In this document: positions 1 to 50,339 of the stretch, one piece after another
How the letters are laid out: the number at the start of each line of letters is the position of its first letter
Position numbering within the stretch: the stretch's first letter is position 1
Assembly (NCBI GenBank): GCA_011109175.1
Contig: RDEW01000037.1
Location: 105,770 to 158,291, forward strand
DNA from: Dicyema japonicum
Taxonomy: Eukaryota; Animalia; Dicyemida
Length of the DNA: 52,522 nucleotides
Direction: 5' to 3'
Position numbers and translations under genes: made by a program
Notes under the pieces: model-generated
Database searches by the model: none
What the model saw: the letters and a program-made list of their open reading frames with translations, nothing else
What the model was told of the DNA's origin: nothing

Positions 1-3000
1 TAATGAATTAGATAATCATGAAATTACACAATCTACAAAAGTTTTCTACATTAAATGTGTTTTGATATGGACAATAGCTTTATCCATATTATTATAATGA
101 GTTACATAATCATGATTATTACATAATCTACTATAGTTATTCTTGAGTAATTGTGACTTTATATGGACAATAATTTTATCCATATTAGTTAATGAATTAG
201 ATAATCATGATATTATACAATCTACGAAAATTATTCTAGAGTAATTGTGACACAATCGTCAATAGTGATTTTATAGTAATTATGACTTGATATTCACTAT
301 AGCTATTCCATATTATTGTAATGAATTAGATAATCATGATTATTACATAATCGACTATAGTTATTCAACAGTAATTATGACTTTTTATGGAATATAGCAC
401 TATCCATATTATTGTAATGAAATTAGATAATCATGATTATTACATAATCTACTATAGTTATTCTACAATAATTATGACTTGATGCATATATCGTTATCCA
501 TATAATTGTAAAGAATTAGATAATCATGATTATTAATAATCTACTATAGTTATTCTAGAGTAATTGGACTTTATATGGACTATATTTATCCATATTATTG
601 TAATGAATTAGATAATCATGATATTACACAATCTACTATAGTTATTCTACAATAATTATGACTTGATGCACATATCATTATCCATATAATTGTAATGAAT
701 TAGATAATCATGATTATTACATAATCTACTATAGTTATTCCTAGAGAAATTGTGACTTGATATGGAATATATTTATCCATATTAGTTAATGAATTAGATA
801 ATCATGATATTATACAATCTACGATAATTATTCTAGAGTAATTGTGACACAATCGACGATAGTTATTTTACAGTAATTATGACTTTATATTCAATATATG
901 TCTTTATCCACAATTATTGAAATGAATTAGATAATTATGATTATTACATAATCTACAAAAGTTTTCTACATTAAATGTGTCTTGATGTGCACAATAACTT
1001 TATCATATTATTATAATGAGTTACATAATCATGATTATTCATAATCTACTATAGGTTATTCTTCAGTAATAGTGACTTGATATGGACAATAGTTTTATCC
1101 ATATTAGTTAATGAATTAGATAATGATTGTTATTACATAATCTACTATAGTTATTCTTCAGTAATATTGACTTTATATGGACTTTATCCATATAATTGTA
1201 ATGAATTAGATAATCATGATTATTACATAATCTACTATATTTTTCTAGAATAATTATGACTTGATGCAATATAGCGTTATCCATATTATTGTAATGAATT
1301 AGATAATCATGATATTACACAATCTACGATAATTATTCTAAAGTAATTGTGACACAATCGACAATAGTTATTTTACAGTAATTATGACTTTATATTGAAT
1401 ATATGTCTTTAATCCATATTATTGTAATGAATTAGATAATTATGATTATTACATAATCTACAAAAGTTTTCTACAATAATTATGACTTGATGCACTATAT
1501 CTTTATCCATATTATTGTAATGAATTAGATAATCATGATTATTACATAATCTACTATAGTTTCTACATTAAATGTGACTTGATGCACTATAGCTTTATCC
1601 ATATTATTGTAATGAATTAGATAATCATAATCATTTTCACAATCTACAATAATTATTCTGGAGTAATTGTGACTTGATATGGACTTTATTCATATAATTG
1701 TAATGAATTAGATAATCATGATTATTACATAATCTACAATAGTTTTCTACAGTAATTGTGACTTTATATGGACTATATGCTTTATCCACATAATTGTAAT
1801 GAATTAGATAATCATGATTATTACATAATCTAAAATAGTTTTCTACATTAAATGTGTTTTGATGTGCACTCTAACTTTATCCATATTATTATAATGACTT
1901 ACATAATCATTATTATTAGATAATCTACTATAGTTTTCTACAATAATTATTCCTTGATGCACTATATCGTTATCCATATTGTAATAATTAGATAATCATG
2001 ATATTACACAATCTACAAAAGTTTTCTACATTAAATGTGTCTTGATATGGACAATAATTATCCATATTATTGTAATGACTTACATAATCATGATATTAGA
2101 TAATCTACTATAGTTATTCTTCAGTAATTGTGACTTGATATGGACCATATATTATCAATATTAGTTAATGAATTAGATAATCATGATTATTACATAATCT
2201 ACTATAGTTATCTTGAGTAATATTGACTTATATGGACTATAGCTTCATCCATATATTGTAATGAATTATATAATCATGATTATTACATAATCTACAAAAG
2301 TTTTCTACAATAATTATGACTTGATGCACTATAACGTTATCCATATAATTATAATGACTTAGATAATCATGATATTACACAATCTACTATAATTATTCTA
2401 CAGTAATTGTGACACAATCGACGATAGCTATTTTACAGTAATTATGACTTTATATTCAATATATGTCTTTATCCATATTATTGTAATGAATTAGATAATT
2501 ATGATTATTACATAATCTACTATAGTTTCTACAGTAAATGTGTCTTGATGCACTATATCGTTATCCACATTATTGTAATGAATTATATAATTATGATTAT
2601 TACATAATCTACTATAGTTTCTACATTAAATATGTCTTGATGCACTATATCGTTATCCATATTATTGTAATGACTTAATAATCATGATTATTACATAATC
2701 TACTATAGTTATTCTAGAGTAATATTGACTTTATATGGACTATATCCATATAATTGTAATGAATTAGATAATCATGATTATTACATAATCTACAATAGTT
2801 TTCTACAGTAATTGTGACTTGATATGGAATATATGCTTTATCCACATTATTGTAATGAATTAGATAATTAAATTACACATAATCTAGAATAGTTTTCTAC
2901 ATTAAATGTGACTTGATGTGCAATCTAACTCTATCCATATTATTATAATGAATTACATAATCATGATCATTACCTAATCTACAATAATTTTCTAGAGTAA

Positions 3001-3583
3001 TTGTGATTTGATGGACTATAGTATTATCCATATTATTGTAATGAATTAGATAATCATGATATTACACAATCAACGATAGTTTTTCTAAACTAATTGTGAC
3101 TTGATGTGCACTATAAATTATCCATATTATTGTAATGAATTAGATAATCATTATCATTACCCAATCTACGAACGTTATTCTACTGTAATTGTGACTTGAG
3201 ATGCACTATAATTTATCCATATTATTTAATGAATTAGATAATCATAATCATTACACAATCAACGATAGTTTTTCTAAACTAATTGTGATTTGATGTGCAC
3301 TATAACTCTATCCATATTATTGTAATGAATTAGATAATCATGATCATTACACAATCTAAGAAAGTTATGCATCACTAATTGAGACTTGATGTGCACTTTA
3401 TCCATATTATTGTAATGAATTAGATAATCATGATCATTACCCAATCTACGATAATTTTCTAGACTAATTGTGATTTGATGCAATATAGCTCTATCCATAT
3501 TATTGTAATGAATTAGATAATCATAATCATTACCTAATCTACAATAATTTTCTAGAGTAATTGTGATTTGATATGGACTATAT
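1..3583. repeat. AT-rich satellite array, ~93-95 bp monomer, ~36-38 copies, some ~130 bp long variants
   Basis: TAATGAATTAGATAATCATG recurs about every 94 bp (e.g. near 1, 95, 190, 320, 415, 508, 601). The array runs off the left edge and ends abruptly at ~3583. Confidence 0.97.
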
Positions 3584-4177
3584 AAAAGCAAGTTCTCCAG
3601 TTTGTCCAAAGTAGATAGGTCAAAGGAGAAATTTTTCTTGCAGGAGCCAGGAGGAGGAACATAAACATTCGCAATTTCAATTTTTCCAATGGAAGTTATA
3701 ACAGAGATTCCAATTATCTCCGTGTTCGATCTTCCATTAAGCTCTTGTGAAGAGAAGGGTTCTCGAGGTATTTTATTGCTTTTCTCACAAGAGTCAGTAG
3801 ACCCCTCCTTGGCCAGATGGGCGGTCGGATCTTACTGTGTTGTATCCGTTAAAGAGAGGAGTACGAATGTTATTTGAAAGTTTCGTTTCCTGGAGAAGGC
3901 AGATGTCCACTCTGTTCCTCTCCAAGAATAAGGAAAGTTCGGCAATTTTTCCTCTGATCCGTTTATGTTTAAGCTTTGATTGTTAACTTCTTTGGGCCTG
4001 GGTTTTGTTTTACGTCTACTGAGGTCAACAGTCTCAATCGATAGAATGTTCCAACAGTGAGAGAATGCCGTCCAGTGGGAAGTCCTCTGGTTGGTAGAGT
4101 GCAAATGGTTCTTTTTAGATATAGTTTAGGAATATATCCGACGCCACCAGAAACGGTGAACCACATGACGCACGCTA
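3584..4177 (-). mobile_element. 5' fragment of Ingi/Vingi-like LINE: pseudoknot, 2A-like peptide, AP endonuclease (decayed)
   Basis: Minus strand reads RLRLLTSVDVKQNPGP, then LNING, VDICLLQETKL, GLLTLVRK and IANVYVPP (APE motifs) across frameshifts. It is truncated at the satellite edge. Confidence 0.85.
4106..4171 (-). ncRNA. HDV-topology nested pseudoknot, copy 1
   Basis: P1 GCGTC/GGCGT, J1/2 ATG, P2 TGGTTC/GAACCA, P3 ACC/GGT, P4 GATAT/ATATC, A-rich linker CTAAAAA. Paired by eye. Confidence 0.6.
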
Positions 4178-4789: not shown

Positions 4790-7650
4790 TTTAAAAATTT
4801 ATTATTAAAAAACATGAGTAGTTAATTACTGAGTACAGCGGATATGATCAAGTGGCTGTCCTTGGAAAAGCCACTCGGTTTCTCTTTCTAAGGAAAGAGA
4901 CCGTCTTGGGGCCAAAGACTCCTCTCGTCTCGACGACCACTGGCTGTACATGGAAACGGTTTAGGAGGCTGCTGTATTTCTTTATTTTTGAGTTTTCATA
5001 TAAACGGGCGGCCTCTCCCGCTTTCATTGCCGACCTCAAAAGTTTCGACTGGGAAAAGCTGTCAGTACAGGCAGCATCCCAAATTAAGCATTTGCCCCGA
5101 GAGAAGGGGAATACAGTCGCTTCCCATTATCCTACTCATGCCCGTTGGCTCTAAATGGATGGGTATCCCGCCAACTCGAGGGCGCGCTTCACCACTTCAT
5201 TTATAGCCTTGTGTCTAGCGAATCGACCTGCGCTTTTTCAACAAAAAAGGGCATGATGTCCATAGCAGTCGACTTTCCGGCCGCATCGGCACTCAAGGGG
5301 TTGGCAAACTTTCAATCCAAGTCTGATGGAGACTCCGGTGCGGACGGTTTCATCGTCTAAGTGAGTTTCCACGTTTCCAGTGGGTAGGGCATTGATCCAA
5401 GCCCCGCTCCACTCGCATCTTGCAGTTAAAAGACAGGCTCGTCGGTGTTGGTTAGATATTTTCAAAAGCCTCTCGTATTTATCCTCGCAGACAGACTCAT
5501 AAAGGTCTCTCTGCCCGGGTTGTTTGACTTTAGGGTGTACCAAATCTTCGATCTTTGACGACTCTGATGGGAGCTGGAGAATCATCATGATCAAATTCTG
5601 ATTGGAGTCCAATGAGGATTGATTTGCCGGGTGTGCTAAATCATATGGTGAGAGAATTCCGAGTCCACCAAAGCGAACGGGCAAGGTTGCTTGTTCCCAT
5701 CCTTGTTCGTCGAATTCGACATTAGTAATACGTTCGGTCGTAGACCGGAATAGGGAATCAATCGCCCCGAGTTGTTGCATTTTCAGGTAACATGGAGCTC
5801 CTCGAAAGACGTAATTTAATTTCTGCGAGGATAAAGCGTTTTTCATGAGAAAAGAGAGGTATGTGCATCCAGCATCCCAAGGCGTAAAAAAGTTTTTTTT
5901 AGTTGCTGTTCTTTAGCCAACAGAGTGTCGTTAATTCCAGTTTCAGCCAAAGTGCATCCAAGTATTTCTAAATGATCCGGCTCGATTTCCGATATTTTAG
6001 GAATAATCTCCCGAAACATTAATAGGATCCGATTCCATTCATATCGGGAGAATCCATAATTAACAATTTCGCATTTGGATGCGTTTAGCTTTAAACCAAG
6101 CGTATCCAATTGGGTTAGTAATCTCTGTAGACAGTCATCTACATTGTTAGGATGACCTCCCAGGGTGTAATCATCCAAATACCACACGTTCAGCGGAGTA
6201 GTAAGGCATCTCATGACACGGTCGACACCGAGGCAGAACAATGCCGGTCCTAGTGGGTCTCCTTGCTGAACCACACGACGAGGGAATGAAGTATTTCCCA
6301 TGTACAAGACTGGACGGTTTTCCATACGAACAATGAACATAATTATATATAGACGGGTAATGGGTAAGACAATCTTCCAAAATTACATCGCGCCGTATGG
6401 TATTGAAGGCGTTTTTTATGTCAATCTTGAGGACCACACAAGGCATGTTCGTTCTGTTTCCAGTAAACATCCGAACGGCATGAACCGCCGCCTCACATCC
6501 ACCAGGAGTACCGACCCCTACTTGGGTTGGTCGCAGTTGTTTGACAAGCATCGGAAGGATTGCTCTGCTAGCAAGTTTAGAAGCCAGTCGACGAAAAACA
6601 AACCCAACAGCAATAGGACGAATTCCTCCTCCACATTTATCAAAGGCAATTAACTTGGCGGAAAACATAATATGACGGATTGCTTCTGGTAATCTTCCGG
6701 AAAGCATTCTGTTGATTAACCTCGTTATAGCCGATAATAGCCGAACACCAGAGTTCCCCGTATTCTGATCAATTAAGTCTTTTAGGTGTCCTGGACGGAG
6801 TCCGTCGAGTCCGCCACTGCTGCTGGGGCGAATGAGAGGATCGCATCTTTCACGTCCCCCTCAGAAATAATCAGACTAGGTAATTCTCCAGAGCAAGTAG
6901 GGATCTGCTCGTCCACTGGCGGACCAGGATGTCGTTCAACCAGTGCATCGTAGGAGTGTTCAGTTGGCTCAATTAGACGGTTATGCTCTTCTAGAGTCCT
7001 CACGGCGGCCCGGACTCCACCTTCAGATAGTTTGCGATGTATCGCTCTTCAATCAATCTTTGTGTTTCTGAGGCATGGTTCTCGTGGTTTGAGGGCTTGA
7101 AGGTATATTCTCGGGAGTCACTGAACAAATTTCCAGAAGAAAACAAGCAAATATTTTCTTTTACAATAGCGTGAGCGATTCCTGATCTTTCCTCTTCTGA
7201 CAGGGCATACATAGCGTGTATGGTGCAAAGTAGAATAATCGTGTCCAATCACTGGTTCAGTCGAAGAAATTGCCCTTTCAATACAATCGTGTAAACAGTC
7301 GGCGGCAGGAACACGGGGAGCTTTTGGAATTTTGATCATGATCCTTCGTGTAGATGCCAAGTTTGCAATTTATTCAAGGGTTTTCTGGTAATCTATTGGT
7401 ATTCGTTCAGGTGAATTAGGTGGAGTCGATGGTGCTTTCGTCCCAGGAAGTAGGCATGCCTGGCAACACCAGTTGGTAATGGTGGTAAGGGCTTTTTTGG
7501 TCATTCCAACACATGACATGTGAAAAACCGACGAACAAACGACACAACATATCAGCCGCTTTCTTTTGTTAATTTTATTGCAAAATTCACAAAGCTCTTC
7601 TCTTTTGTCGATCTTGTGCATATCGCTTCTGGTTACTTTTTCTCAATTAC
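4790..7650 (-). mobile_element. CRE/SLACS-clade non-LTR retrotransposon, near full length, frameshifted (PHD finger, RT, restriction-like endonuclease)
   Basis: N-terminal C4HC3 PHD finger (CEFC...CCVVCSSVFHMSC...WCCQAC), RT motifs GGGIRPIAVG, QQGDPLGPALF and WYLDD, C-terminal CRCG...HAL.C...RH..IN and PVVVETRG. Confidence 0.92.
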
Positions 7651-7869
7651 ACCACACACAAGTTTTCAGTAATTATATCTTTAATTATATTATCTAAACT
7701 CTCCAATTCATTATTCACCAATGAGAGAGTTTGAAAAACGACATTCATCAATTTTTATCCAACAATTAGTAATTGATTCAGAGTGTATTTGTAGTCATCG
7801 TACTTATCAAAAAAATTCCAAGGCAAGAAATATCACACGAATTTTTTTCACCACTTATTGTCTTAAATG

Positions 7870-8500
7870 ACAAATTGTGTCTTTCTTAAATTTTTCAAGC
7901 CAACCATTGAGGTATAGTTCAAATTCCTAGCTACTTTTATAGCTATGTTTTAAGAATAGGTCCTGAAACGGAAATACTTTAAAAAGGCATTCATAAACAA
8001 TTTTATCGAATTTCTGTGACAACTGTCTCTTCTCTGTGAAATTTGACTAAGACAATTTGATTGTACAAACCCATTATTTATTAAGTTCATATAATTTTGT
8101 TTAATTCTAGATACTGCCCCTAAACAATAGAATTATCAGATAACCTTTACTAATTTTATATTTTTTGACAATATCTCGTTCGCTCATGAAACAATTTCGT
8201 TGATTTCTTGAACAATTTTAAGCTTTAACTCCAGAGTAAGCTTCCTCCCCATGACAACAAAAACGCAAATCTAGCACGCTAAGTTTAAGAAAATTTTATA
8301 TAATTAAATTTAATATTAATTGCAAGACTTTATATAAATTAAAAAAAATTAAGTGCCCCACAAAGTGGTTCATGTAATTTCCAAATTTGGAAATTACTGT
8401 ATTAAAATGATCTAATTTTCAAACTGCCCCAAAACCTGGGGGTGCCCCAAAAATAGATGTGCCCCAATTAGGAGGTCCGCTCAAAATGGAGGTTGCACTG
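7870..8500 (-). mobile_element. pogo/Tigger-like transposon, 5' remnant
   Basis: Terminus TA-CAGTGCAACCTCC at 8500, similar to the other pogo ends. Minus-strand LTLELKLKIV (psq HTH) and SGPIL...NGWL (CENP-B HTH) remnants. Confidence 0.65.
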
Positions 8501-8539
8501 TACTTTGTTTTTGACAATAATTAAGGATATCTAAAATAA

Positions 8540-8800
8540 ATGCTTCAATTATTAATACTTCATATGAAGCTAGCAGACATGGTTTATCTATTGGTCTAAA
8601 TCCGATATTACTAAGTTTTTCAGATTTATCATATTTAGTTCTCTTTGCAATAAAACTTTCGACAGTGTCAACATTTTGTGGGTGAGTTTTTTCCTTATGT
8701 CTTTTTAATTGAGACGGCTTCAAAGAGTTGTTTCCCATTATAACGTCGCATATCATACACTGCTTTTTTACTGCGCTTTATCGACGTTGTCAGATCCAGT
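8540..8800 (-). mobile_element. hAT Buster/ZBED5-like transposase N-terminal fragment
   Basis: CMICDVIMGNNSLKPSQLKRHKEKTH...LLASYEV is typical of Buster/ZBED5-type transposases. Confidence 0.75.
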
Positions 8801-8854
8801 ATATTAAAAAAATCCATATTGGACATAGGAATCAATCCATTTGCGATTAACCAT

Positions 8855-10700
8855 TATTATTATTATTATTATTATAAGCAACTACATAGAATCATATAAA
8901 CTATAATTCTATCCTTAAGGTGTTTAGAAGGATGACAGGGCGCAGGTTTTCAACTGGCCCAGGTGGTTTATTACTTTTTTGAACTGGTACTAGTATCCCC
9001 TTTCCAATTTCTGAAAAGTCCTTGTTTTCTATCATGTCATTCAGCAATTTTGAGAGTTTATCTGCAAGTTCTGGAAGGCCAAATTTTAGCAATTCAGATG
9101 GTATATTATCTGGTCCTGGAGAGCGCCCAGATTTAAGTTTCCTTATCGCCATGCAAACCTCCTCCGGTGAAATGATCCGTTCAAGTGTTGTGTTCTTAGC
9201 CGTGAAATCTGATTTTTCTCCTTTTACAAAGAACAGTTGTTCAATATGCGATGCTATGAACTCTGTCTGTTCTGCAACATTTCCTATTGTTTTTCCATTT
9301 CTGTCATGCAAAATAAGTTTCACTGATTGGCTCTTCCTCCGTATTAGTCGTATAGCCATGAATGTCGCAGCATTGTCTTTAAGGTTTTCTACCTCTCTGA
9401 TCTTGCTTTCCAACTGACTAGTGTGATGTAGTCTGTTTAGGAGTTTGATTTTTCTCTCAATTTGCCTTCGTTCTTGTTTCAGTTTGCAAACAGTCTGAGG
9501 ATCGACAGTATTTTCGGATCTAAGCCTTAAGTTCTTCTGCAAATTCAATAGGGCTGACACTTCCGGGTGACGCTGACTGCTATGGGGTTTAAGTTCCCCC
9601 AATGTTTGTCAGCAGCGGAAATGATCCCTCTCATAGTTTCGAGCCATGCCTTTCCTGGTGAAAGATCCGATGCCGTATTATTAATTGAATCCGATACACA
9701 TTCTTTATAGTCTGCTTGTACTTTTGGTGAAGAGCCCAAGAGTTCAGTCATATACCTTCTTGATCGCGTGGAATCTCCACCACGATGTGTTTGGAAGAAG
9801 CATCTTCTATTAGTTATCCCGTAGAGGAACTCCTCCGCAGTTGGACCAAGTCTTAAGCTGAATCTTGCTGACACAATTTTGTGATCACTGTTAACAGTTA
9901 GTCCTCCATAAGATCTCGAGTCCCGTAAGAGAGATTTGTCTTTTACTCGACACAGAATATAATCGATCTGATTATAAATCCTTATCAGATTTCCGGTGGT
10001 CGATAGTCTAGTGCCCATCCACGTTGTCTTGTGGCGTGCGGAATGTTGGAATTGAGTATTGCACAGGAATAAATCAAAGGATTCGCAGAAATATGCCAGA
10101 GCAGTACCAGAATAGTTCCTGATCCCCCTTCCATGTGGTCCAATAAAACGTTCGTGTCCTTGATGTACCCCAGCTTTAGCATTCCAATCACCAGCGATAA
10201 AGAGGAACGATGAAAACTTCAGAGAAGATACGACCTCGACAAGTTCTTCGTAGAAAACGTCCAATTCCTCTGGGTTTTTGGAAACACGGCCACTATGTGG
10301 GGCGTACACGTTCACAATGGAAATTAGTTGCCTGGACTTCCCTTTGGGTCCAATAAGAAATTGAATAACACATATCCTGTCATCAATTTTCCAATATCGA
10401 TGTAATCTGGGGAGCAAATTCTTGTGAACAGCGAAACCCTGTCCATAGTGTTTACAGTACGATGGAAGGAGGATTAGTCTGTAGTCTCCAAGGTTTTCAT
10501 CGAGTCCTTTTCTGAGCTTCGTCTCTTGGAGACAGCAAACAGAGCATCCATATTTTGCAAGGTCCAGACATAGTTGGTGCCTCTTCGACCAGTCATTAAG
10601 GCCCCTGGCATTGAAGGTAAGGGTAGAAAACCAGAAAGGATTATTCAAATACGTATTAGACATATGTGCTATAGAGGGACGTCACCACCTCAACCAAAAA
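8855..10700 (-). mobile_element. RTE-clade LINE, internally deleted (APE and linker retained, most of RT missing, (TAA)n tail)
   Basis: ORF 9545-10663 has TFNARGL, CLQET, AGDWNA, QIDYI and SDH (APE). ORF 8901-9602 ends at NLRPVILLNT and is joined to a GTTGCTTA(TAA)n tail like the one at ~13980. Confidence 0.88.
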
Positions 10701-16079: not shown

Positions 16080-16855
16080 TTCATTTATTTATTTATTTTT
16101 ATTTATTTTAATAACCCCGGGAACACCGAGAAAGAAAGACAAGAGTCAAACAGTTAGGTGATCCCAGTCCTTGCAATCAATTATGCCATTCGACGTCTGT
16201 GATCTTCCATCGTCCTCACTACTTTCCGGAAGAGCCTTCTCTCGGTCTTGCAGAGGAATCCGATCGGGGAGGGGAATTTCTTATCCAATCGGTTTTCTCT
16301 TGCCATGGGAAGGATCAGGCGAAGCGGATTTCCATCTTCCTCACAGACTCGAAGAAATCCGGAGCCACCGACTACGGATCTTAGCTTCCATGAGTAGTGG
16401 GTCGACTGTTGATCCATTACGTGGGCAAAGCATACTGATTGTTTTCTGGTGTATTGAGTTGACTCTTTGGACCATAGACTCCGATAGCGCGAATCTCCAT
16501 GCAACGGAGGCATACTCAACGGCAGGCGAAATTGTTTGTTGGTAGAGGGTAGAAACGGAAAAGTCCATGTTCCTCGTGGTCCTCCGGACAATGGCGCGTA
16601 AAACGTTAACTTTCTGGAGGCCCCTGGTAATCATGTCTGTTGCGTGGGAGTTGAAATTGAGAAGACTGTTGTACTTGACTCCAAGGACAGTGTGGGACCT
16701 TGTCACTGGAATCCGAGTGGGACCAATAAAGATACTCGGTTCATCCTTGGAACGACGGTCCGAAGTGAAAGTGGAACAGATGGACTTGGTTGCAGAAATC
16801 GTAATTCGATTGCCAACAATCCAATCGTGGAGAGTGTTCTATTTTGTCTGAGTTT
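16080..16855 (-). mobile_element. 3' portion of I/Ingi-group LINE (RT C-terminus and tail)
   Basis: TVLGVKYNSLLNF...STLYQQTISPAVEYASVAW, GGGATCAC motif and A-rich tail. Very similar to 49440-50020. Confidence 0.85.
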
Positions 16856-16885
16856 TAAGATTATTTTTGAAAATGTTGTTAGCGT

Positions 16886-16945
16886 GGTGTCATGTGGCTC
16901 ACCAGAAATGGTGTCACCCATTCCAAAATGAAACGAAAAGAGCCA
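16886..16945 (+). ncRNA. HDV-topology nested pseudoknot, copy 2
   Basis: P1 GGTGTC/GTCACC (one mismatch), J1/2 ATG, P2 TGGCTC/GAGCCA, P3 ACC/GGT, small P4, linker CGAAAA. Confidence 0.65.
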
Positions 16946-17016
16946 ACAGCTTCTCCCCACCGTCTGGTGGTCCTTTCATCTCCTGTGTCTTCGACCCTGT
17001 CTGGTGTCCCCATTTA

Positions 17017-17067
17017 TCCAGACTTTTGATTCTTCTATGTGGAGACGTCGAAACCAATCCTGGTCCA
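17017..17067 (+). other. StopGo/2A ribosome-skipping peptide SRLLILLCGDVETNPGP
   Basis: Exact D(V/I)ExNPGP consensus with upstream hydrophobic LLxxC/G segment, in frame with the APE domain. Confidence 0.9.
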
Positions 17068-19243
17068 TGGAGATGTTTTACAATTATACAATTGAATACG
17101 AATGGGATCAGGAAGAAAATCTTTGAACTCCGGGCACTCCTCCTCGAAAATGAGGCTGACCTCGCTTTAATACAGGAGTCCAAGCTATCTCCCTCCATAC
17201 CAACACCCTCTTTTCCCGGATACACAGTGATCCGTAAAGATCGTCAGGGAGGACGCGGAGGAGGACTACTTACTATTATAAAGAACGATATTCCTTTTAT
17301 GGATACAACTCAACGAACCTCAGAGCTTCTTGGCTCCGACAAGACTTTGGCGCAGATTACTGTCAAAATGGAGTTATTCCTGTCCTTTTGGATCCATTTG
17401 GCTAATTTATATATATTTCCTTTTGGATCCATTTGGCCTCCATAAGGATCGTGTCCGTCATCTTACACCCCTGATTTATCACGCATTTCAACATTGAAAA
17501 ATCTACTGTTATGTGGGGATCTTAATGCACGACATCCAGTTTGGCTCACTTCCCAATCTTCTGATAACCGAGGAGAACTCATTGCAAATTATCTTCCTGA
17601 CCTGATTATACTGAACAACCCTAACTCACATACGAGGACCCCATTAAGGATGACTGATAGCTGCACATCCCCCGACTTAACACTATGCTCACTTCTCTGG
17701 CTAGACTATTTCCTGGAACGTCTTTTACGGCTTCTCCAGTGACCACAATCCAATCCTCCTAAAACTGAGAGGTCTTCGACGATACAGGAGACGGCCGGCG
17801 GAATCAAAAAGATTCAAGGATTATACGAAGGTTGACTGGTCTGGTTTCAGTAACCTTGTGGATAAATTCTTGGCTCGGAGATTATCCTTCCCAATACGCT
17901 CCATTGATGAGGCCGCTGAAATTATCAGCGCTGCCATTCAGAAAGCTGACCATATTTTTATTCCTATATCGTCATACAAGAAGTTTATTCCTACCCTCAG
18001 CTCTTATACAATAAGTCTTATAAAACAAAGAGACCGGCTGAAGAGATGCCATCTGTTGGACATGAAGTCTTTGACAGCCCTCAGACAACTGAATAAAAGG
18101 ATCTGTCAGAGCATAAAAGAACACAAGGACAAGAGATGGCAGCATCTAGTTAACCACCTCGACAGGAAAAGTACATCCCGACATTTCTGGAAAACTCTTA
18201 AACAAGTCAAGTCGGAGCTGGATGATGCAGACGGAACCGGAAAGTCTTCTCCTGAACACTTATGCCACCTACATCCTAACACCCTTATGAAACATTACGC
18301 TGGAATTAGCTTCAAACCATTCTCGAAACACCTGGACATTAAGGTGCGTGCCCATAAACCGAAGAAGGAACCTTACCACGAACTATTCACAGATGACCAA
18401 GTCTTGGATGTGATCACCAGATTAAGAGGCCTGACAAAGTATCTTCTATTCACCTAAAACACCTAAGCCACTACGCAATTGGCTACCTCACGCATATATA
18501 GAACCTCTCCATTAACTATAATATTATTCCAAGATTTGGAAGAATTCTATCATCAGACCGATATTGAAGGCTGGGAAACCAGAGACAGAACCTGCTCCTA
18601 CAGGCCTATTTCCGTTACCAGCACACTGTCAAAAATTATGGAGAAACTTGTATTATCAGTCATTATTCCGTATCTTCTACGTCCTATATTTCAACATGGT
18701 TTCCTCCGCGGTAGGTCCACCGCTACATACTTGGCAACTATCGCAGTTCATTGCCGACGGTTTTAAACCCATCCCCAGCCTCACAAACGCACAATTTTGG
18801 TTTATATTGACATCAACAAAGCCTTTGACACTGTTTCGAGGAAAATCCTGGTTGGAAAAATATTTTCTACTAATATTAGTTCGAATTTGAAATTATGGCT
18901 GGCCAACTTTTGTCTGGAAGACGTGGAAGAGTAGTCAGTGGTGATCTCAGATCTAGATCACGATTACTACCGAATGGGTCACCCCAGGGGTCTCCATTTT
19001 CACCAATTCTATTCAACCTATTCCTACACGACCTACCTAATGATGAGACGAAGATTCCCTGCTATTATCCTACGCAGACGATGTAGTCATTGCAATACGG
19101 AACCGCTCGACGCAAGTTGCATCCATTAAAACTCAAACCAGTTTCATGTGTTAACTGATCGAAAAATAGTGTTAACTGATTGAAAAATAGTTGATTATTT
19201 ACTATTTCAATTATCGTTTTAAAAATAATGCATACCCCATAGG

Positions 19244-21735
19244 ATGGGGAAAGAAGAGAAATCACTTACGTCATTAGTAAAGGAGAATGTCCACACATTT
19301 TTCTCAAGGAACCTATTGGCAGACTCAGAAAAGCTCACCTACAAATTTCAAAACCATGAGAAGCCAACATCGACTATCTCGGACACTCAGAGATTAAGAA
19401 GCTCGATCCGTCGAAAACTTTCGGAAGGTGGTATCCGTGCTGCGGTGAGGATCCTTGCAGATCAACAATGTATAATTGAACCGTCTGAACAGTCCTACGC
19501 ATCACTTGTTGAGCGACACCCAAGTCTCCCCAACGACCACCGGGTTCCCCCTTGCCCAGGACAATTACCCAATCTACTTGTCTCTGAAAAGGACGTAAAA
19601 GATGGATCCTCTCTTTCGTCCCGAGTAGCAGTGGAGGACTAGATGGGCTCCGTCCGGGTCACATCAAAGATCTCATTGCTCATAACACGGGCAACTCTGG
19701 GGTCCGGCTCGTGTTGGCTATCACCAAACTAATGAACAGGATGCTATCAGGGACACTACCAGAAACAATTCGACACGTAATGTTCTCCGCAAAGTTAATC
19801 GCATTCGACAAGAAGGGAGGTGGAATACGCCCTATTGCAGTCGGAATGGTCTTCCGTCGGTTGGCATCAAAGCTTGTATGCAGAGCAATCCTACCTACGC
19901 TGATAACACAGCTGCAACCAACCCAAATAGGGGTCGGCACACCGGGGGGTTGTGAAGCGGCAGTTCATGCTGTCCGAACATTCACCGAAAAGAACGTGAA
20001 CATTCCTCACGTAATCGTCAAAATTGACATTAAAAATGCCTTCAACTCGATACGACGTGATACAATTCTGGAGGATTGCTTCACATACTACCCATCAGTG
20101 TACAGCTATATTCATAGTTCGTACGGAAAACCATCCAGTCTGGTACATGGCCAATATTACATTCCATCGTCTTCTGGAGTCCAACAAGGAGACCCACTGG
20201 GGCCCGCCTTGTTCAGCCTGGGAATTGCCCGTATCACAGGATACTGCTCCACTCCTCTGAGAGTATGGTATTTGGATGATTGCACCATGGGCGGCCATCC
20301 GAAGGATGTACTAGATTGTTTGAAAAGTCTGATAGTACAATTGGAATCCCTATGCCTAACTCTAAACACCAATAAGTGTGAAGTAACCAATTTTGGATTT
20401 CCACAGTCTGAATGGGATCTGATCCTTGGTATGTTCAGAGAGATCATTCCGAAAGCCACAGAAACCAAATCAGAACAACTGGAAATACTTGGATGCCCTC
20501 TTACTGATGCTGGAATCAGTAACACTCTAAGAACAAAAGAACATCAACTAAAAACAACATTCAGACGTCTGGAGATGCTGGACGCACACACCTCCCTATT
20601 CCTCTGAGAAACGCCTTATCAGCACAGAAACTGAACTACGTTCTTCGGGGGGCACCCTGCTACTTGAAAATGCAACAGCTCGATGCTATCGATTCCCTCT
20701 TCCGGAGTACTATTGAACGTATCACAAATGTGAAATTTGACGACCAAGGGTGGGACCAAGCGACCCTACCCGTTAGCCTGGGCGGACTGGGAATCCCTTC
20801 AACGAAAGATCTGGCTTGCCCTGCTTATCTATCCTCTTTGGGCTCCAGCCGACTGCTGGTCAGGATGATTCTCCAACTCCAAACAGAATCATCTGAAATC
20901 ACAGAGATGGAGCATTTGAAGGGGATGATGCCTGAGCAGAAAGATCGTTACAGGACCATCTGCGAGGATAAATATGAGAGGCTTCTGAACCAATCAAACC
21001 AACACAGACGTGCATGTCTAGTCACTGGAAGATGCGAATCGAGTGGCGCATGGATCAATGCACTCCCAGTTGGCAGTGTCGGGACCCATCTTGACGACGA
21101 TACTGTCCGCATCGGCATCTCCACCAGACTTGGACTGGAGATTTGCCGGACCCACAAATGCCGATGTGGCGCAACCGTCGATTGTTATGGACTCCATGCC
21201 CTCTCTTGTCGAAGGAGTGCAGGACGATTCCCAAGACACAAGGCGATCAACGGAATTGTCAAGCGAGCCCTGGAGTCTGCGGGATACCCAGCCATACTAG
21301 AACCTGTTGGTCTGGACAGAGGAGACGGAAAACGTCCCGACGGAATCACAATTTTTTCATTCGAAGAGGGGAAACCTTTGGTCTGGGACGCTACTTGTGT
21401 CGACACGCTTTGCCCGTCCAACATTGTCGGAAGCGCGGTAGACACACTGTATTCCGCGGAAAAAACGATGAGGGCAAAGGAGAAAATACGAAGCGCTACG
21501 CGACCGATTCGCGTTTTATCCGATAATGGTCAAGAAAACTGGAGGAATAAGTGGAAAATCGTTTCGCTTCCTAAAGAAACTTGGACGCTTAGCTACACTA
21601 AAAAGCCACGACGAACGTGAGACTCGGTGGCTACTCCAGTTGATCTCTGTTGCAATTGTGAGAGGCAACGCAACGTCGATAATGTCGACGGGGTCCACTT
21701 TGGATGATGGCAGTTTTAAATATGATTTACTGTAA
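19244..21735 (+). mobile_element. CRE/SLACS-clade non-LTR retrotransposon, 5' truncated, frameshifted
   Basis: GVQQGDPLGPALF, WYLDD, CRCG...HALSC...RHKAIN, KRPDG and WDATCVDT (RT plus REL). Paralogous to 4790-7650. Confidence 0.93.
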
Positions 21736-22386: not shown

Positions 22387-22459
22387 TACCCCGGATGGGA
22401 TTCGAACCCACGACCTTAAGATTATGAGACTTACGCGCTAACCACTGCGCCACCGAGGC
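22387..22459 (-). tRNA. tRNA-Met (CAT), elongator type
   Basis: 73-nt cloverleaf GCCTCGG...CTCATAA...TTCGAAT...CCGGGGTA with a U31-U39 pair. G1 rules out an initiator-type A1-U72 pair. A T6 Pol III terminator follows immediately. Confidence 0.95.
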
Positions 22460-31353: not shown

Positions 31354-32318
31354 TACTCCTTCTCCGTGAAATAAGTTAATTGATCCCTTTTCGGTTTTCT
31401 TTAGCGGAGGTTTGGTTGGGTCAGTCCTCGTGGTTTTTGTGAGAGATTTTCGCATAGTATTTTATTATGGTTTAGGTTTTTTTGGCTGAATTTGTCATAT
31501 CCGGGTGTCCTCTCATTCACCTTCGAGATATTTCGAATAGTCTTCCAGACTTCGGATGTTGACCGGTTATGATTTAATGACGTAAGAACCATCTTCCATT
31601 TAGCTCTCTGTATTTTGAATTCATTGGATTTTATTTCCTCGTTCAGCACTTGTAGACGGATCCTTTTTTCGGAGGAACGGGTCCCTGCTTTTTAGAGACG
31701 GTTTCCTTTCTTGATCAGAGCCTTCCGTACTTTCTCGTGTAAACGACATATCTTTTAGGGACAGATATTGTTCTTGCTTCCAAGATGACTTTGTTGACGT
31801 AAGCAACCACTATATCAAGGGAGGTAAAGTTTTCCAGCTGTATATTAGTCAAATGTTGGGTAACTGATCGGAATAATTGCCAATTTGCAAGATTGTATAT
31901 GCAGGTTTCTTCTTACCACTGATAATTTCTCTTGATTTTTATCAGAATAGGGTTATGATCACTTCGGGTGACGTAGATGACGGATCAATTAATCGTTGTT
32001 GAAAGCTGTGGGAACAGAGTGTAATATCTGAAGAGGTTGGATTGTCAGAGTTCCTTTGAGGTGTTCTTGTGTTTTTGATGGGTCATTGATGATTGTCAGA
32101 TTGCCAGACTGCGTCAACAGCAAATTTCCTCTTGTATCTGCTGACTGATTTAACAGCCAGAGAGGTGTTTGGCATTCAAATCGCCGCATATCACAACTTC
32201 GTTCCAAATATCCAGTTCTAATAAGTCAGGCATAGTGTAATTTTTCGGACATGAGCCAGGAGGCGGAATATACATGCTTACATAATATAGTCTTCCTTTT
32301 GTTGTGGCAACAGATATT

Positions 32319-32647
32319 TAATTAATTTAATTTAATAACCCCGGATACACTGAGAAACAAGTTAAAGTAAACAACTAATTAAATGTATCCAGTTTCCACT
32401 TCTACAGAAAAAGTCCATCCGGAATCAGCATAAAGGGTAAGACGTCCATAGTTGCAGTTGTGGAAACCCCTCCAGTGGAGTGGGGGAGAGCAAATGATCC
32501 TTTTTTGTGCCGGCCTGGCACTGGGCGCCACCTAGACAGGTAGATCACATGACGCCACTCTAATAGGAAGAGAGGAGGAACAGACGAACAAAACAGAAAC
32601 TTCAATCAATTAGCCACGAAGTACCACATGGCGCCACACGGCAGAAA
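32319..32647 (-). mobile_element. ~330-bp non-autonomous retroelement, copy 1
   Basis: 24-bp TSD CCTTTTGTTGTGGCAACAGATATT (32295-32318 and 32648-32671). Homologous end to end with 48544-48870. LINE-type A-rich tail. Confidence 0.92.
32495..32556 (-). ncRNA. HDV-topology nested pseudoknot, copy 3
   Basis: P1 GGCGTC/GGCGCC, J1/2 ATG, P2 TGATCT/GGATCA, P3 ACC/GGT, P4 (G)TGCC/GGCA(C), A-rich linker. Confidence 0.65.
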
Positions 32648-33098
32648 CCTTTTGTTGTGGCAACAGATATTCCGATTGTCTCCGTGGTTTTATCACTTCC
32701 CAAAAGTTTTTTCGCTTCGAGTGTATGGTCCTCATACTTTAGGCCTTTTCTGATTAATGTAAGCAGTCCTACTCCGCGTTTCTTAGTGCTGTCGTATCCG
32801 GGAAAGAGGGCGTAGTATATTTTGCTGATAGCTTCATTCTTAGATGAGCACGATGTCAGCTTTAAGTTTAACAATCAGAGTTCTAAGTTCAATAATTTTG
32901 CCTTTTATTTCGTTCACATTTTGTTGTATAACGGAGATCCGGTCCTTTGACTTGTGTTGGTTACGAATCCAAGAAGCTGTAGCCAAACCAGTAATCCGTC
33001 GAATTCGGAAAAGTTCATATAATTTGGTATTCAATGAACGTATAGAATAAAAGGAGTTATTGGACTGCGTCCTGTTTCTCTTCAGCTGATAAAAGAAA

Positions 33099-33490
33099 TT
33101 TATTTATTTTATTTATTAACCCAGAAAAGAGAACACCAAAAAAGAAAAAGTAAACCAACTAATTAAGTGATCCCGGTACGCCTCAACAGAATCGAGAGGT
33201 TTTTCCTATGTTCTCCAGAGTACCCACGGCTTTCCTGTATAGACGACGATCATCTTTCACTAGAGTTTGAAGAGGGGAGGATTTTTTTCCCAAATTAAGT
33301 GTATTTGATGCTTCTAGCCTTGAATGGAAAAAACGACTTGTATCTTGACCACATAGACCGATGAAGCCGGAGCCGTTATTTTTGCTTGCGGCGTGGTCAA
33401 GCATTGGGGGGAAAAGATCGAGGGTGGATATGCTAGACGTGCAAGTTTGCCAATTAGGGAGTTGATCTTGTATGAATTGGATGTTGAAGC
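33099..33490 (-). mobile_element. 5'-truncated LINE 3' end with TSD
   Basis: GGGATCAC motif and A-rich tail, flanked by CTCTTCA(G/T)CTGATAAAAGAAA on both sides. Confidence 0.8.
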
Positions 33491-33630
33491 TCTTCATCTG
33501 ATAAAAGAAATGACATCAGCTGATAAAAGAAACGATTTTCCTTCGAATCTAAATTATTTGTTTTTTTTATTTTAAATCAAAAAATTCAATTTATTAAAAG
33601 TAATTTATTAAAATAAAATTTAAATATATA

Positions 33631-44140: not shown

Positions 44141-44241
44141 TCTATTCAGACCAAAAATGAAACAATCCCAGTTTATATTCATATTTTAATAAGGAGTCTG
44201 ATTTCCTGAAGCGCGGTCGCCAATAATTCTCATGGTTGGTT

Positions 44242-44286
44242 GAATGTCACGTAACTCACCAAACTGGAGACATTTAAAAAGAGTTA
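44242..44286 (+). ncRNA. Nested pseudoknot, copy 4 (no P4)
   Basis: P1 GAATGTC/GACATTT, J1/2 ACG, P2 TAACTC/GAGTTA, P3 CC/GG, linker AAAAA. Confidence 0.55.
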
Positions 44287-44950
44287 CACTGCCCCTATCC
44301 TTCAAGGATGGACTGACAAGGACAACTGTCTTTGTTTGGGGACGTCGAATCGAACCTCGATCCCTAAAAATCATGCAAATAAATATAAACGGGATCAAAT
44401 GTAAGATTATTGAACTCAGAAACCTTATGGAAAATTATCGAATTAATGTCCTTCTATTACAAGAATCCAAACTCAGAAGTGCGAACACAACTCCAAAATT
44501 TCCTGGATACTCAGTTATCCGCAAAGATAGATGTAGAAAACTTGGGAAAGGCTTACTAACTATCATACGAAACGGAATCCCTTATAAAGATATCACCAAA
44601 TATGTCTACAACCGTCTCCATAACCTTGAAAGTATCGAAATTCTGGCCACAAAAATCCAACTCCCAAGGTTACGTATTATTCTGATCAATTCAAATCTAC
44701 CTCTTTCATCATCAGCCAATTGCCTAAAACTTTCGTCGATCAGCTCACTAAAGAACGTTCTTATTTGCGGTTACCTAAATACAAAACATACGCTCTGGCT
44801 GAGAGGTCAGACGTCAAACAAGCGGGAGATATCTTAATCGAAGACTTGAGAACCTTTTGCATCCTAAACGACCCTAACTTTCACAAAAGAACTCCCTCAA
44901 GACAAAACCGTCATCCCCTGACGTTTCAATCACGTCTCCCTTCTTCATTC
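44242..44950 (+). mobile_element. 5' fragment of Ingi/Vingi-like LINE: minimal pseudoknot, decayed 2A, APE
   Basis: QLSLFGDVESN (44338-44355, one nt out of frame) precedes IMQINING...LLQESKL...CGYLN. Confidence 0.82.
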
Positions 44951-47910: not shown

Positions 47911-48543
47911 CATAAAATTCGATTTCCAACTTGCATCTTGTAGATGCATTCAATTTATTTTGAAAAAAGGAAATATCTTTATCTTTTAAATGAGGATGCT
48001 TCATTATAAATGTCGCTTGGAGCAAGCTAACTCTTTCTCTTACATTTTTTGCCGCACATGCGAAGCTATAAATATTATGGCTCTCGTGAAACTGCTAATA
48101 ATAATAGTTTGGAAGGAGCAAGAGACGTGCTATGCATTATATGATGGCATATTACACATTCTGCTGTATGCGGTAAATCAGATCCGTTCTGATAAAATCA
48201 TATGAAGGTAGCTTCCATCATATTTTCTATTATTATAATTATAAAAAACCTTTAGTGAATATTTTTTGGAATATCTTATGCAATTATTGTTTCTCATTTA
48301 AAATCTTATAAGGTTCGCCGGAACCCAGGTTGGGAACCACTTGATTATTGGAACTGGGATTACCTAAATGGGTGACATTTTTTCTGTCTTTCTTTCCCGG
48401 TGATCCCTGAGTTCTAAATAAATAATAATTTATTCAAACTAACCGCTAATGGCCAGGCGAGAGTGAATATTGTCAACGATTGGTTGTCTTCGAACCGACT
48501 AACGATTTCTGCCGAAAAATCAATACGTAGGCCAATCTCAAAT

Positions 48544-48870
48544 TAATTAATTTATTTATTAACCCCGGATACACCGAGAAAGAATTTAAAGTAAACTACT
48601 AATTGAGTGTATCCAGTTTCCACTTCTACAGAAACAGAGTCCATCCGGAATCAGCATAAAAGGTAAGACGTCCACTACATGCAGTTGTGGAAACCCCTCC
48701 AGTGGAGTGGGGAGAGCAAATGATCCTTTTCGCGCCGGCCTGGAACTGGGCGTCACCTAGACAGGTGGATCACATGACGCCAATCTAATAGGAAGAGAAA
48801 AGAGGAACAGACAAGCAAGCAGAAAACTTCAACCAATTAACCACGCAGCACCACATGGCGCACGCGGATA
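48544..48870 (-). mobile_element. ~330-bp non-autonomous retroelement, copy 2
   Basis: 16-bp TSD TAGGCCAATCTCAAAT (48528-48543 and 48871-48886). Homologous to 32319-32647 over the full length. Confidence 0.92.
48721..48781 (-). ncRNA. HDV-topology nested pseudoknot, copy 5
   Basis: P1 GGCGTC/GACGCC, J1/2 ATG, P2 TGATCC/GGATCA, P3 ACC/GGT, imperfect P4, linker CGAAAA. Confidence 0.65.
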
Positions 48871-49439
48871 TAGGCCAATCTCAAATAATAATATAAAATT
48901 AAAAAATATTTAAAGAACAAAATAATTTAATTAAAAATAGATTTAAATTTGTCATACTTTTTTGTTCGTTGTGATGAAACCTGTGACAGTTTCGAAAGAT
49001 GATTTTTTATAAGAGCAGTATAAACAATATGCGAGTATGAATGATCAATAATGTGTCTAGTTCATGCAAAGAGGCATGGATAAACCTCAAATGGAAAAAG
49101 ATTACGAATGTACTATCATTGATCAGCATCACTGGCACCTGGATCTCCCCAGCTTGGGATTCAACTCCAACCTAAAATCATCGGATGAGAATAAACTGAG
49201 AACAGCTCACATGTCATTTGGTGGTTTCAACAGGACTGTTGAGGTTGAGCGGATTTGTTATTAAAGGAGCTAATGAAGGAAATAAAGAAAGAAGATGTCG
49301 AGGAGCCTGCAGTCTGCTATTCTATTTCAAAAAAGTTTAGAAAAGTGACGAAAGGAGGAAATGATAAAAAGAAATTTAAATTATGACTTATTTTGTATTA
49401 AAATATTTTATTAATTTCTTTCGTCTCCACTAGATCTTT

Positions 49440-50020
49440 TCTTGGAGTCAAGTACGACAGTCTACTCAATTTCAACTCCCACGTAAAAGACATGATTACC
49501 AGGGGCCTCCAGAAAATTAACGTTTTACGCGCTCTTGTCCGGAGGACCCCGAGGAACATGGACTTTTCTGTTTCTACCCTCTACCAACAAACAATCGCGC
49601 CAGTCGTTGAGTATGCCTCCGTTGCATGGAGATTCGCGCTATCGGAGACTATGGTCCAAAGAGTCAACTCAATACACCAGAAACAATCAGTATGCTTTGC
49701 CCACGTAATGGATCAACAGTCGACCCACTACTCATGGAATCTAAGATCCGTAGTCGTGGCTCTCGATTTTTTTGCGTCTGTGAGGAAGATAAAAACCCGC
49801 TTCGTCTGATCCTTTCCATGGCAAGAGAAAACCGATTGGATAAGAAATTCCCCTCCCCGATCGGATTCCTCTGCAAGACCGAGAGAAGGCTCTTCCGGAA
49901 AGTAGTGGGGACAATGGAACATCACAGACGTCGAATGGCACAATTGATTGCGAGGACTGGGATCACCTAACTGTTTGACTCTTTTGTCTTTCTTTCTCGG
50001 TGTTCCCGGAATTATTAAAA
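49440..50020 (+). mobile_element. 3' portion of LINE, sister copy of 16080-16855
   Basis: High nucleotide similarity to the reverse complement of 16090-16700, with the same tail. Confidence 0.9.
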
Positions 50021-50339
50021 TAAAAATAGTCCGCTCGGATTCTTCAGTGTTGAGGAACCTTTTTCTCCTTTTATTACTTGGCAATCTATTCCGTGTAATA
50101 CCTAACTTTATACAAAGAATATTATTTTTATCCCATTTTGAGAGATAACTTTTCTTTACTCTGGGATCGATCCCATGTGGTCTCTAATTCTAATCTGATA
50201 CCAAATAAGTCAATTATTGTGACCGTTTCAGATTGAGATACGGCTGAATACGAACCGTTAAAAAATCGATATTCAATGTACCGATTTAAAAAGCCAATCA
50301 AACAAAATGGCAACCGTCCCAACAACAATCTAGTAACAA

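Follow-up and report, generated by a model that had tools for sequence, protein, structure and literature searches.

The window analysed here, a stretch of 52,522 nt from the dicyemid Dicyema japonicum (assembly GCA_011109175.1, contig RDEW01000037.1, positions 105,770 to 158,291), contains two copies of a non-coding retroelement of about 330 bp whose head and tail are both homologous to those of 2A-LINEs. The anatomy of the element, this homology, the number of copies, the uniformity of their ends and the target-site duplications (TSDs) were observed directly, and the element very probably arose from a single-ORF 2A-LINE of ~2.9-3.0 kb, the family designated FX or a close relative, through the loss of ~2.65 kb from its interior. 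Such a deletion would have joined the LINE head (a pseudoknot, hereafter the knot, and the leader ORF as far as its D-V/I-E codons, ~167 nt) to the last ~65-70 nt of the LINE, which comprise a 3' hairpin, GGGGTTA and a (TAAAT)n tail. Upstream of the head lies a freely evolving 63-nt spacer capped by a second LINE 5' terminus (~23 nt).

Both copies in the window read 5' to 3' on the minus strand and are bounded by exact flanking repeats.

32319-32647, minus strand: copy A, non-autonomous element, 329 bp, 96% identical to a 30-copy consensus
32295-32318, unstranded: TSD of copy A, 3' side, 24 bp, exact repeat of 32648-32671
32648-32671, unstranded: TSD of copy A, 5' side, 24 bp, exact repeat of 32295-32318
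48544-48870, minus strand: copy B, 327 bp, B-type subfamily (knot 48711-48783, spacer 48784-48846, 3' module 48544-48617)
48528-48543, unstranded: TSD of copy B, 3' side, 16 bp, exact repeat of 48871-48886
48871-48886, unstranded: TSD of copy B, 5' side, 16 bp, exact repeat of 48528-48543

The two copies are 89% identical from end to end, and their similarity stops at the TSDs. The end-to-end alignment and the exact flanking repeats confirmed what the first-pass annotation of this DNA had described, namely two copies with matching ends and independent TSDs of 24 and 16 bp. Both copies contain the string TCTGTAGAAGTGGAAACT, and both end in a GGATACA...GTGTATCCGGGGTTA hairpin followed by an A/T-rich tail like the LINE tails at 16098-16136 and 49990-50024. 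The two ends of the element are unrelated (a GC-rich 5' end versus an A/T-rich repeat tail), and its TSDs measure 8-24 bp. A MITE or other DNA transposon was rejected, as the element is without terminal inverted repeats and its TSDs are not of fixed length.

Copy A used as a query against the whole assembly (67.5 Mb in 377 contigs) gave 1,927 first-look candidates, and all 40 genome matches that were scored were near full length (query positions 1-21 to 310-329) at 90-95% identity. Three short motifs were counted genome-wide, each with a reversed-pattern control that returned no match: a tail 16-mer with at most one mismatch (931 matches), a 5'-end 16-mer with at most one mismatch (736 matches) and a knot 20-mer with at most two mismatches (1,162 matches). 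The family thus comprises about 1,500-1,900 copies, mostly full length; the figure of ~1,500, which corresponds to ~0.8% of the genome, consists of the motif counts corrected for ~8% divergence, and the uniformity of the 5' ends over all ~1,500 copies is likewise a matter of motif counts. The 30 copies behind the consensus, which was built for the non-coding 330-bp element only, were picked by similarity to copy A and are biased towards its subfamily, and the consensus of the B-type subfamily represents only three copies. Exact flanking repeats of at least 10 nt were present at 12 of 29 element loci versus 3.7% of mismatched flank pairs, and those of at least 12 nt at nine of 29 versus 1.1%. 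About half of the copies begin with (G)CCGCGTGG straight after the TSD, and the rest carry 5-25 extra A/T-rich bases at that point; ragged 5' junctions are the usual outcome of target-primed reverse transcription (TPRT). The checks of copy number, end uniformity and TSDs that had been proposed bore out a non-autonomous element of ~330 bp, with 329 and 327 bp in the two copies, no coding capacity and a mostly full-length genome-wide family. The paper on the D. japonicum genome reports 49% repeats and describes no such family (PMC6736024).

The possibility that the copies are independent internal deletions of LINEs, or segmental duplications, rather than one retrotransposing family is extremely improbable. 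One pair of sampled loci (L015 and L016) does represent a single duplicated locus with identical flanks; however, the hundreds to thousands of copies have one internal junction and unrelated flanks, and their individual TSDs differ in length and sequence. This reading is already contradicted by the present data.

The modules of the element, given here for copy A, are ordered as follows from its 5' end.

32620-32642, minus strand: 5'-terminal module, a second copy of the LINE 5' terminus, ~23 nt, with a CGTGGCGCCATGTGGT core
32559-32619, minus strand: variable spacer, ~63 nt (element positions 25-87), no LINE match
32484-32558, minus strand: pseudoknot module of HDV topology, helices P1-P4 (P1, 32551-32556 with 32524-32529; P2, 32542-32548 with 32494-32500; P3, 32539-32541 with 32530-32532; P4, 32517-32521 with 32507-32511)
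32394-32483, minus strand: remnant of the LINE leader ORF, from a second hairpin to decayed 2A codons (TCTGTAGAAGTGGAA)
32319-32393, minus strand: LINE-derived 3' module, consisting of a hairpin (CTGGATACA...GTGTATCCGG), GGGGTTA and a (TAAAT)-like tail

The 5'-terminal module is identical at 15 of 16 positions to positions 9-24 of the FX head and to positions 3-18 of the head of family F2, and it is conserved between the element subfamilies; CGTGGCGCCATGTGGT sits 8 nt from the start of the element, much as it does in the LINEs. No source for the spacer was found in a comparison with full-length copies of families F1, FX, F2 and F6. A knot is present in each copy (A, 32484-32558; B, 48711-48783), as the first-pass annotation had noted, but it is not located at the 5' end of the element: it begins ~90-98 nt in, behind the spacer and the duplicated 5' terminus. 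The initial description of a LINE 5' module fused to a 3' tail was thus correct as to the homology of head and tail and incomplete as to the spacer and the additional ~23-nt terminus. The element reads ATG-TGA at the site of the LINE start codon, and no ATG-initiated ORF longer than 41 aa overlaps it, so that it has no coding capacity.

The junction between head and tail falls between GTGGAA and ACTGGAT, and the CTGG of the junction is already part of the stem of the 3' hairpin (CTGG...CCGG). The element had been said to contain a segment that resembles a decayed C-G-D-V-E-T motif. Alignment with FX supported the D-V/I-E codons; the T codon (ACT), however, overlaps the hairpin stem and may derive from the tail, because CTGG belongs to that stem. 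An old copy of the element (locus L048, positions 2996-3301; 73% identity) carries 19 extra nucleotides with a cleaner TGT-GAC-GTT-GAA (C-D-V-E). This copy represents an old subfamily in which the second C-D-V-E codon string is better preserved.

The genome contains 224 intact 2A motifs, whose codon signatures are of many kinds, and therefore many families of 2A-LINEs. Those present in the window include a cousin family, F1, and a truncated copy of FX, the latter located ~450 bp from copy A.

16871-17066, plus strand: head of an F1 copy, with knot, leader and 2A (CGDVETNPGP); cousin LINE family
16088-16856, minus strand: 3' 770 nt of the same F1 copy, with the common hairpin and tail
49441-50024, plus strand: 5'-truncated F1 copy with the common tail
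33101-33492, minus strand: 5'-truncated FX copy with a TSD of ~17 bp (TTTCTTTTATCAGCTGA); the closest parent or partner found

A full-length F1 element of ~3.0 kb starts with AATGTTGTTAGCGT, which is followed by the knot, the leader and CGDVETNPGP, and ends with a hairpin (GGGATCACC...GGTGTTCCC), GGGGTTA and a (TAAAA/TAAAT)n tail. Since full-length F1 copies hold both ends, the head and the tail belong to one element. F6 and F2 follow the same plan at ~2.85 kb, and this head-and-tail architecture is shared by F1, F2, F6 and FX.

Several further observations concern the LINEs of the window. The F1 sequences at 16088-19117 form one full-length copy in two inverted halves, which lie head to head and 14 bp apart (nt 1-2247 on the plus strand at 16871-19117; nt 2249-3015 and the tail on the minus strand at 16088-16856); this arrangement looks like an inversion of the twin-priming type. 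An F2 head occupies 3994-4176 on the minus strand, with the ATG of its knot in frame with DVKQNPG, and the head of a further 2A-LINE family lies at 44239-44370 on the plus strand, where a minimal knot at 44239 is without P4. A different, longer LINE extends over 4880-10700 on the minus strand, with an AP-endonuclease ORF at 9545-10663; it has neither a knot nor a 2A head, its 3' end is different, and it is 71-75% similar to an RT-bearing sequence at 20179-21295. Elsewhere in the assembly, two of ~7 incidentally sampled element copies abut a LINE 5' end in reverse orientation, head to head (L046, ~22 nt upstream of an F1 5' end, and L066:1-256). These pairs could be due to twin priming with two different RNAs, or to chance.

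Outside the LINEs, positions 1-3600 of the window consist of an A/T-rich satellite array with a ~93-bp unit, a GC content of 22-27% and modular, irregular spacing of 90-280 bp. A tRNA gene at 22387-22459 on the minus strand (67.6 bits in Rfam) is tRNA-Met, because its anticodon loop reads CAU; an Rfam search of the whole window at the gathering threshold found nothing but this one tRNA.

To which of these LINEs the element is closest was decided by alignment of both ends. A blastn comparison of the element with the window found only its two copies and ~39 nt of LINE tail, and the in-window F1 was rejected as the parent because its similarity to the element (85-87% identity) is confined to that ~39 nt. 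The FX family, which has 515 candidates in the genome at 88-91% identity, matched both ends. Upstream walks from old FX copies at first gave only 5'-truncated copies, and the third walk reached full-length FX copies. Element positions 88-254 aligned with positions 10-179 of the FX head at 76% identity over 156 columns (z=20 versus shuffles), and element positions 258-323 aligned with the FX tail at 92% identity over 61 columns (z=16 versus shuffles), which, together with the match to the in-window LINE tails, upholds the claim of a LINE-like tail. The head alignment ends at ...CTTTCTG(G/T)AGA..GAA, which encodes S-G-D-I-E in FX, and the 2A codons lie 168 nt from P1 in the element versus 167-170 nt in the LINEs. 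The element consensus used as a blastn query found FX heads. An nhmmer profile of seven LINE heads, built with no element sequence, recognized consensus positions 98-266 with 28.2 bits (E 1e-7), whereas the best of 1,000 dinucleotide shuffles scored 2.8 bits against the same profile.

The 3' hairpin folds in both the element and F1, and its stems differ by paired changes (GGATACAC/GTGTATCC versus GGGATCAC/GGTGTTCCC); the 3' loop of FX is much closer to that of the element than the loop of F1 is. A pattern search found no LINE with a 2A coded like the remnant in the element (GTGGAAAC followed by NPGP). These comparisons support the derivation of the non-coding element from the 2A-LINE clade by internal deletion. 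FX is the closest parent found; its head is 76% identical rather than near-identical, and the true parent may therefore be extinct or unsampled. Accordingly, the proposal that the element is a parasite of the 2A-LINE stands in so far as it concerns the clade, and needs correction in that the F1 of the window is only a cousin and FX the closest relative. The alignments also placed the breakpoint and the ~2.65 kb deleted. Given the uniform ends and the real TSDs, neither of the two outcomes that the first-pass annotation had held to speak against its proposal was observed: the 5' ends are not random, and the two halves do not come from unrelated families, FX matching head and tail alike.

A size of ~330 bp, a high copy number and a LINE-like tail are also typical of a classical Pol III SINE, in which a tRNA, 5S or 7SL head would be combined with a LINE tail and the likeness of the body to LINE heads would be due to chance. 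The element itself argues strongly against such an origin. ARAGORN found no tRNA gene in it (0 genes), Rfam gave no tRNA, 5S or 7SL match at E<=10, T4 tracts lie inside it, and its body is homologous to LINE heads (E 1e-7, z=20). We therefore regard this explanation as highly improbable, and it too is already contradicted by the present data.

The fold of the knot was examined in an alignment of 11 knots, two of them from the element copies, one from an FX head and the other eight from LINE heads. With the helices P1/P2/P3/P4 in HDV order, 90.7% of the cells were paired, versus 36-55% when the partners were slid; P1 and P2 reached 98% and 96%, respectively, with compensatory changes. Thirteen pairs had changed on both sides, and none of 500 shuffles equalled this result. 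A long-range helix between the 5'-terminal GGCGCC and P1' was rejected, as the changes in the B-type subfamily do not preserve it. Double-compensated pairs distinguish the element from FX at two places in P2 (GGTTC/GAACC in FX, GATCC/GGATC in the element) and at two in P4. The reading frame of FX, MWFTF...SGDIEQNPGP-KPLVIMQLNANG..., begins at the ATG in J1/2 and continues into the endonuclease, and one of the P2 changes in the element turns the second codon of the LINE from TGG to TGA. No LINE in the assembly was found by pattern search to combine the element-type P2 with an intact NPGP. The simplest reading is thus that this pair changed after coding capacity was lost, which would indicate that the RNA fold has been under selection within the element, although some of the compensatory changes could have happened in the parent LINE lineage.

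Comparison of the subfamilies pointed in the same direction. Fixed substitutions between the A-type and B-type (the latter with n=3) numbered 10 in the 63 positions of the spacer and five in the 242 positions elsewhere (Fisher p = 9.5e-5), so that divergence was about six-fold slower outside the spacer. Within the knot there was one substitution in 75 positions, and this sole change turns a U.G pair of P1 into U-A. These data suggest that the knot has been kept by selection as an RNA structure, most likely as a non-cleaving cis signal, which might act, for example, in protein or ribosome binding, in a 5'-end function or in stability.

Several features of the knot recall a self-cleaving ribozyme of the HDV type, which would trim the RNA of the element or the LINE from longer transcripts. 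Its helix order, P1-P2-P3-P1'-P4-P2', is that of the HDV type and covaries; a G.U pair stands at the base of P1 in FX and F6; an unpaired C, with A's after it, precedes P2' in FX, F1 and F7; and there are precedents in R2, L1Tc and NARTc (PMC3185411, PMC3383444, PMC3414825). Cleavage at P1, however, would remove whatever lies upstream, and full-length LINE copies retain 9-15 conserved nucleotides there, while the element retains ~90-98 nt upstream of its knot. Because these nucleotides are inherited and the 5' motif of the element is nearly as frequent as its tail motif (736 versus 931), the RNAs that were copied do not appear to have been cut at P1. Furthermore, the unpaired C before P2' is absent from the element, F2, F6, F4 and F3; in the element, P4 is separated from P2' by GAAAAA or AAAAAA, and a C in J4/2 occurs only in FX, F1 and F7. 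Neither the element nor the F1 or FX head matched an HDV-type family of Rfam at E<=10, which is weak evidence since the Rfam models do not score pseudoknots. With the nucleotides upstream of P1 kept and the unpaired C missing at the catalytic position in the element, self-cleavage is unlikely, and the knot is probably not a ribozyme, at least in the RNAs that get copied.

A role of the head at the DNA level deserves more weight than the ribozyme, though we would still not favor it. The head may have been kept only as the internal promoter of the LINE, the fold having no role in the mobility of the element. In L1Tc and NARTc, the Pr77 sequence serves both as internal promoter and as ribozyme (PMC3383444). 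Moreover, the 5'-terminal ~23 nt of the LINE occur twice in the element, once exactly at its own 5' end, as would be expected of an initiator, and conservation between subfamilies extends over the entire head, also over the leader outside the knot. On the other hand, paired compensatory substitutions in P2 and P4 would not be expected of a promoter, nor would the replacement of U.G by U-A in P1 of the B-type. The promoter and RNA-fold roles are mutually compatible. The earlier proposal that the knot acts in cis for mobility is therefore plausible in the light of the compensatory changes and the slow divergence between subfamilies, and it falls short of proof because the head may serve as a promoter in DNA.

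Transcription of the element by Pol II from its LINE-type 5' terminus is probable, because it has internal T4 tracts and no head of the Pol III type. The endonuclease and reverse transcriptase of the LINE would then copy the element RNA in trans by way of the common 3' hairpin and tail, a step suggested by these shared structures and by the overlapping age of the copies, and the two elements would constitute a "stringent" LINE/SINE partnership. Insertion by TPRT would account for the TSDs of 8-24 bp and for the ragged 5' junctions. As a tentative extension, which we regard as less likely than not, the knot could be a non-catalytic cis signal at the 5' end, required by an APE-type LINE besides its 3' hairpin; its function might be to bind the LINE protein, or to dock the RNA on ribosomes where the start codon is embedded. 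If the LINE does need both the 5' knot and the 3' hairpin, a parasite would need to carry both ends of its host. To our knowledge, recognition of two such signals has so far been described only for the RLE-type element R2. If this idea is true, a ribozyme fold has been exapted into a structural signal.

The dicyemid family offers a natural experiment, in which an HDV-shaped fold over a LINE start codon was carried into a non-coding element. There the fold kept its pairs by compensatory change, one such change destroying the reading frame, and has no sign of self-cleavage; the role of such folds as structural signals of retrotransposition, rather than as ribozymes, is now directly testable. The repeats that make up 49% of the reduced 67.5-Mb dicyemid genome have been essentially undescribed (PMC6736024), and one defined pair of LINE and parasite is now mapped as to parent, breakpoints, subfamilies and copy number.

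An element that is the parasite of a parasite is already known from trypanosomes and flies. NARTc, the partner of L1Tc in Trypanosoma cruzi, and RIME, the partner of ingi in T. brucei, are non-coding deletion derivatives of LINEs that keep the first tens of nucleotides of the LINE, with the Pr77 hallmark that combines an internal promoter and an HDV-like fold, and its 3' end (PMC3383444, PMC4035085). N-terminal 2A peptides are known in single-ORF APE-type LINEs (PMC3708506). The dicyemid element resembles NARTc and RIME in being non-autonomous and non-coding, in its retention of a LINE head and 3' end, and in its parent, a single-ORF LINE of the APE type with an N-terminal 2A peptide. It differs from them in that its head is longer (~167 nt, extending to the 2A codons) and internal, with the duplicated 5' terminus and the 63-nt spacer ahead of it, and in that its fold is without sign of cleavage, with inherited upstream bases and no unpaired C before P2'. 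Its host is a dicyemid animal rather than a kinetoplastid.

The R2 SIDEs of Drosophila consist of a 5' ribozyme-type module joined directly to the LINE 3' UTR, and are inserted through TPRT by the LINE protein with variable 5' junctions (PMC3414825). The dicyemid element likewise combines a 5' ribozyme-type module with a LINE 3' end and has variable 5' junctions, and TPRT is the probable route of its insertion. However, R2 is of the RLE type and inserts at a specific site, its ribozyme cuts at the exact 5' end, and SIDEs are rare, whereas the ~1,500-1,900 copies of the dicyemid family are dispersed, have TSDs and belong with a LINE of the APE type. Stringent pairs of LINEs and SINEs, such as UnaL2 and UnaSINE1, have in common a 3' stem-loop and a tail of short tandem repeats, and the SINEs of such pairs, UnaSINE1 among them, have Pol III (tRNA or 5S) heads. 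The conserved 3' hairpin and the short tandem-repeat tail behind it are likewise common to the dicyemid LINE and its partner, whose head, in contrast, is derived from the LINE and not from a Pol III gene. From NARTc, RIME and the SIDEs, the dicyemid family is set apart by its long retained head, its high copy number in a reduced genome, its internal and apparently non-cleaving knot, and its duplicated 5' terminus with the spacer.
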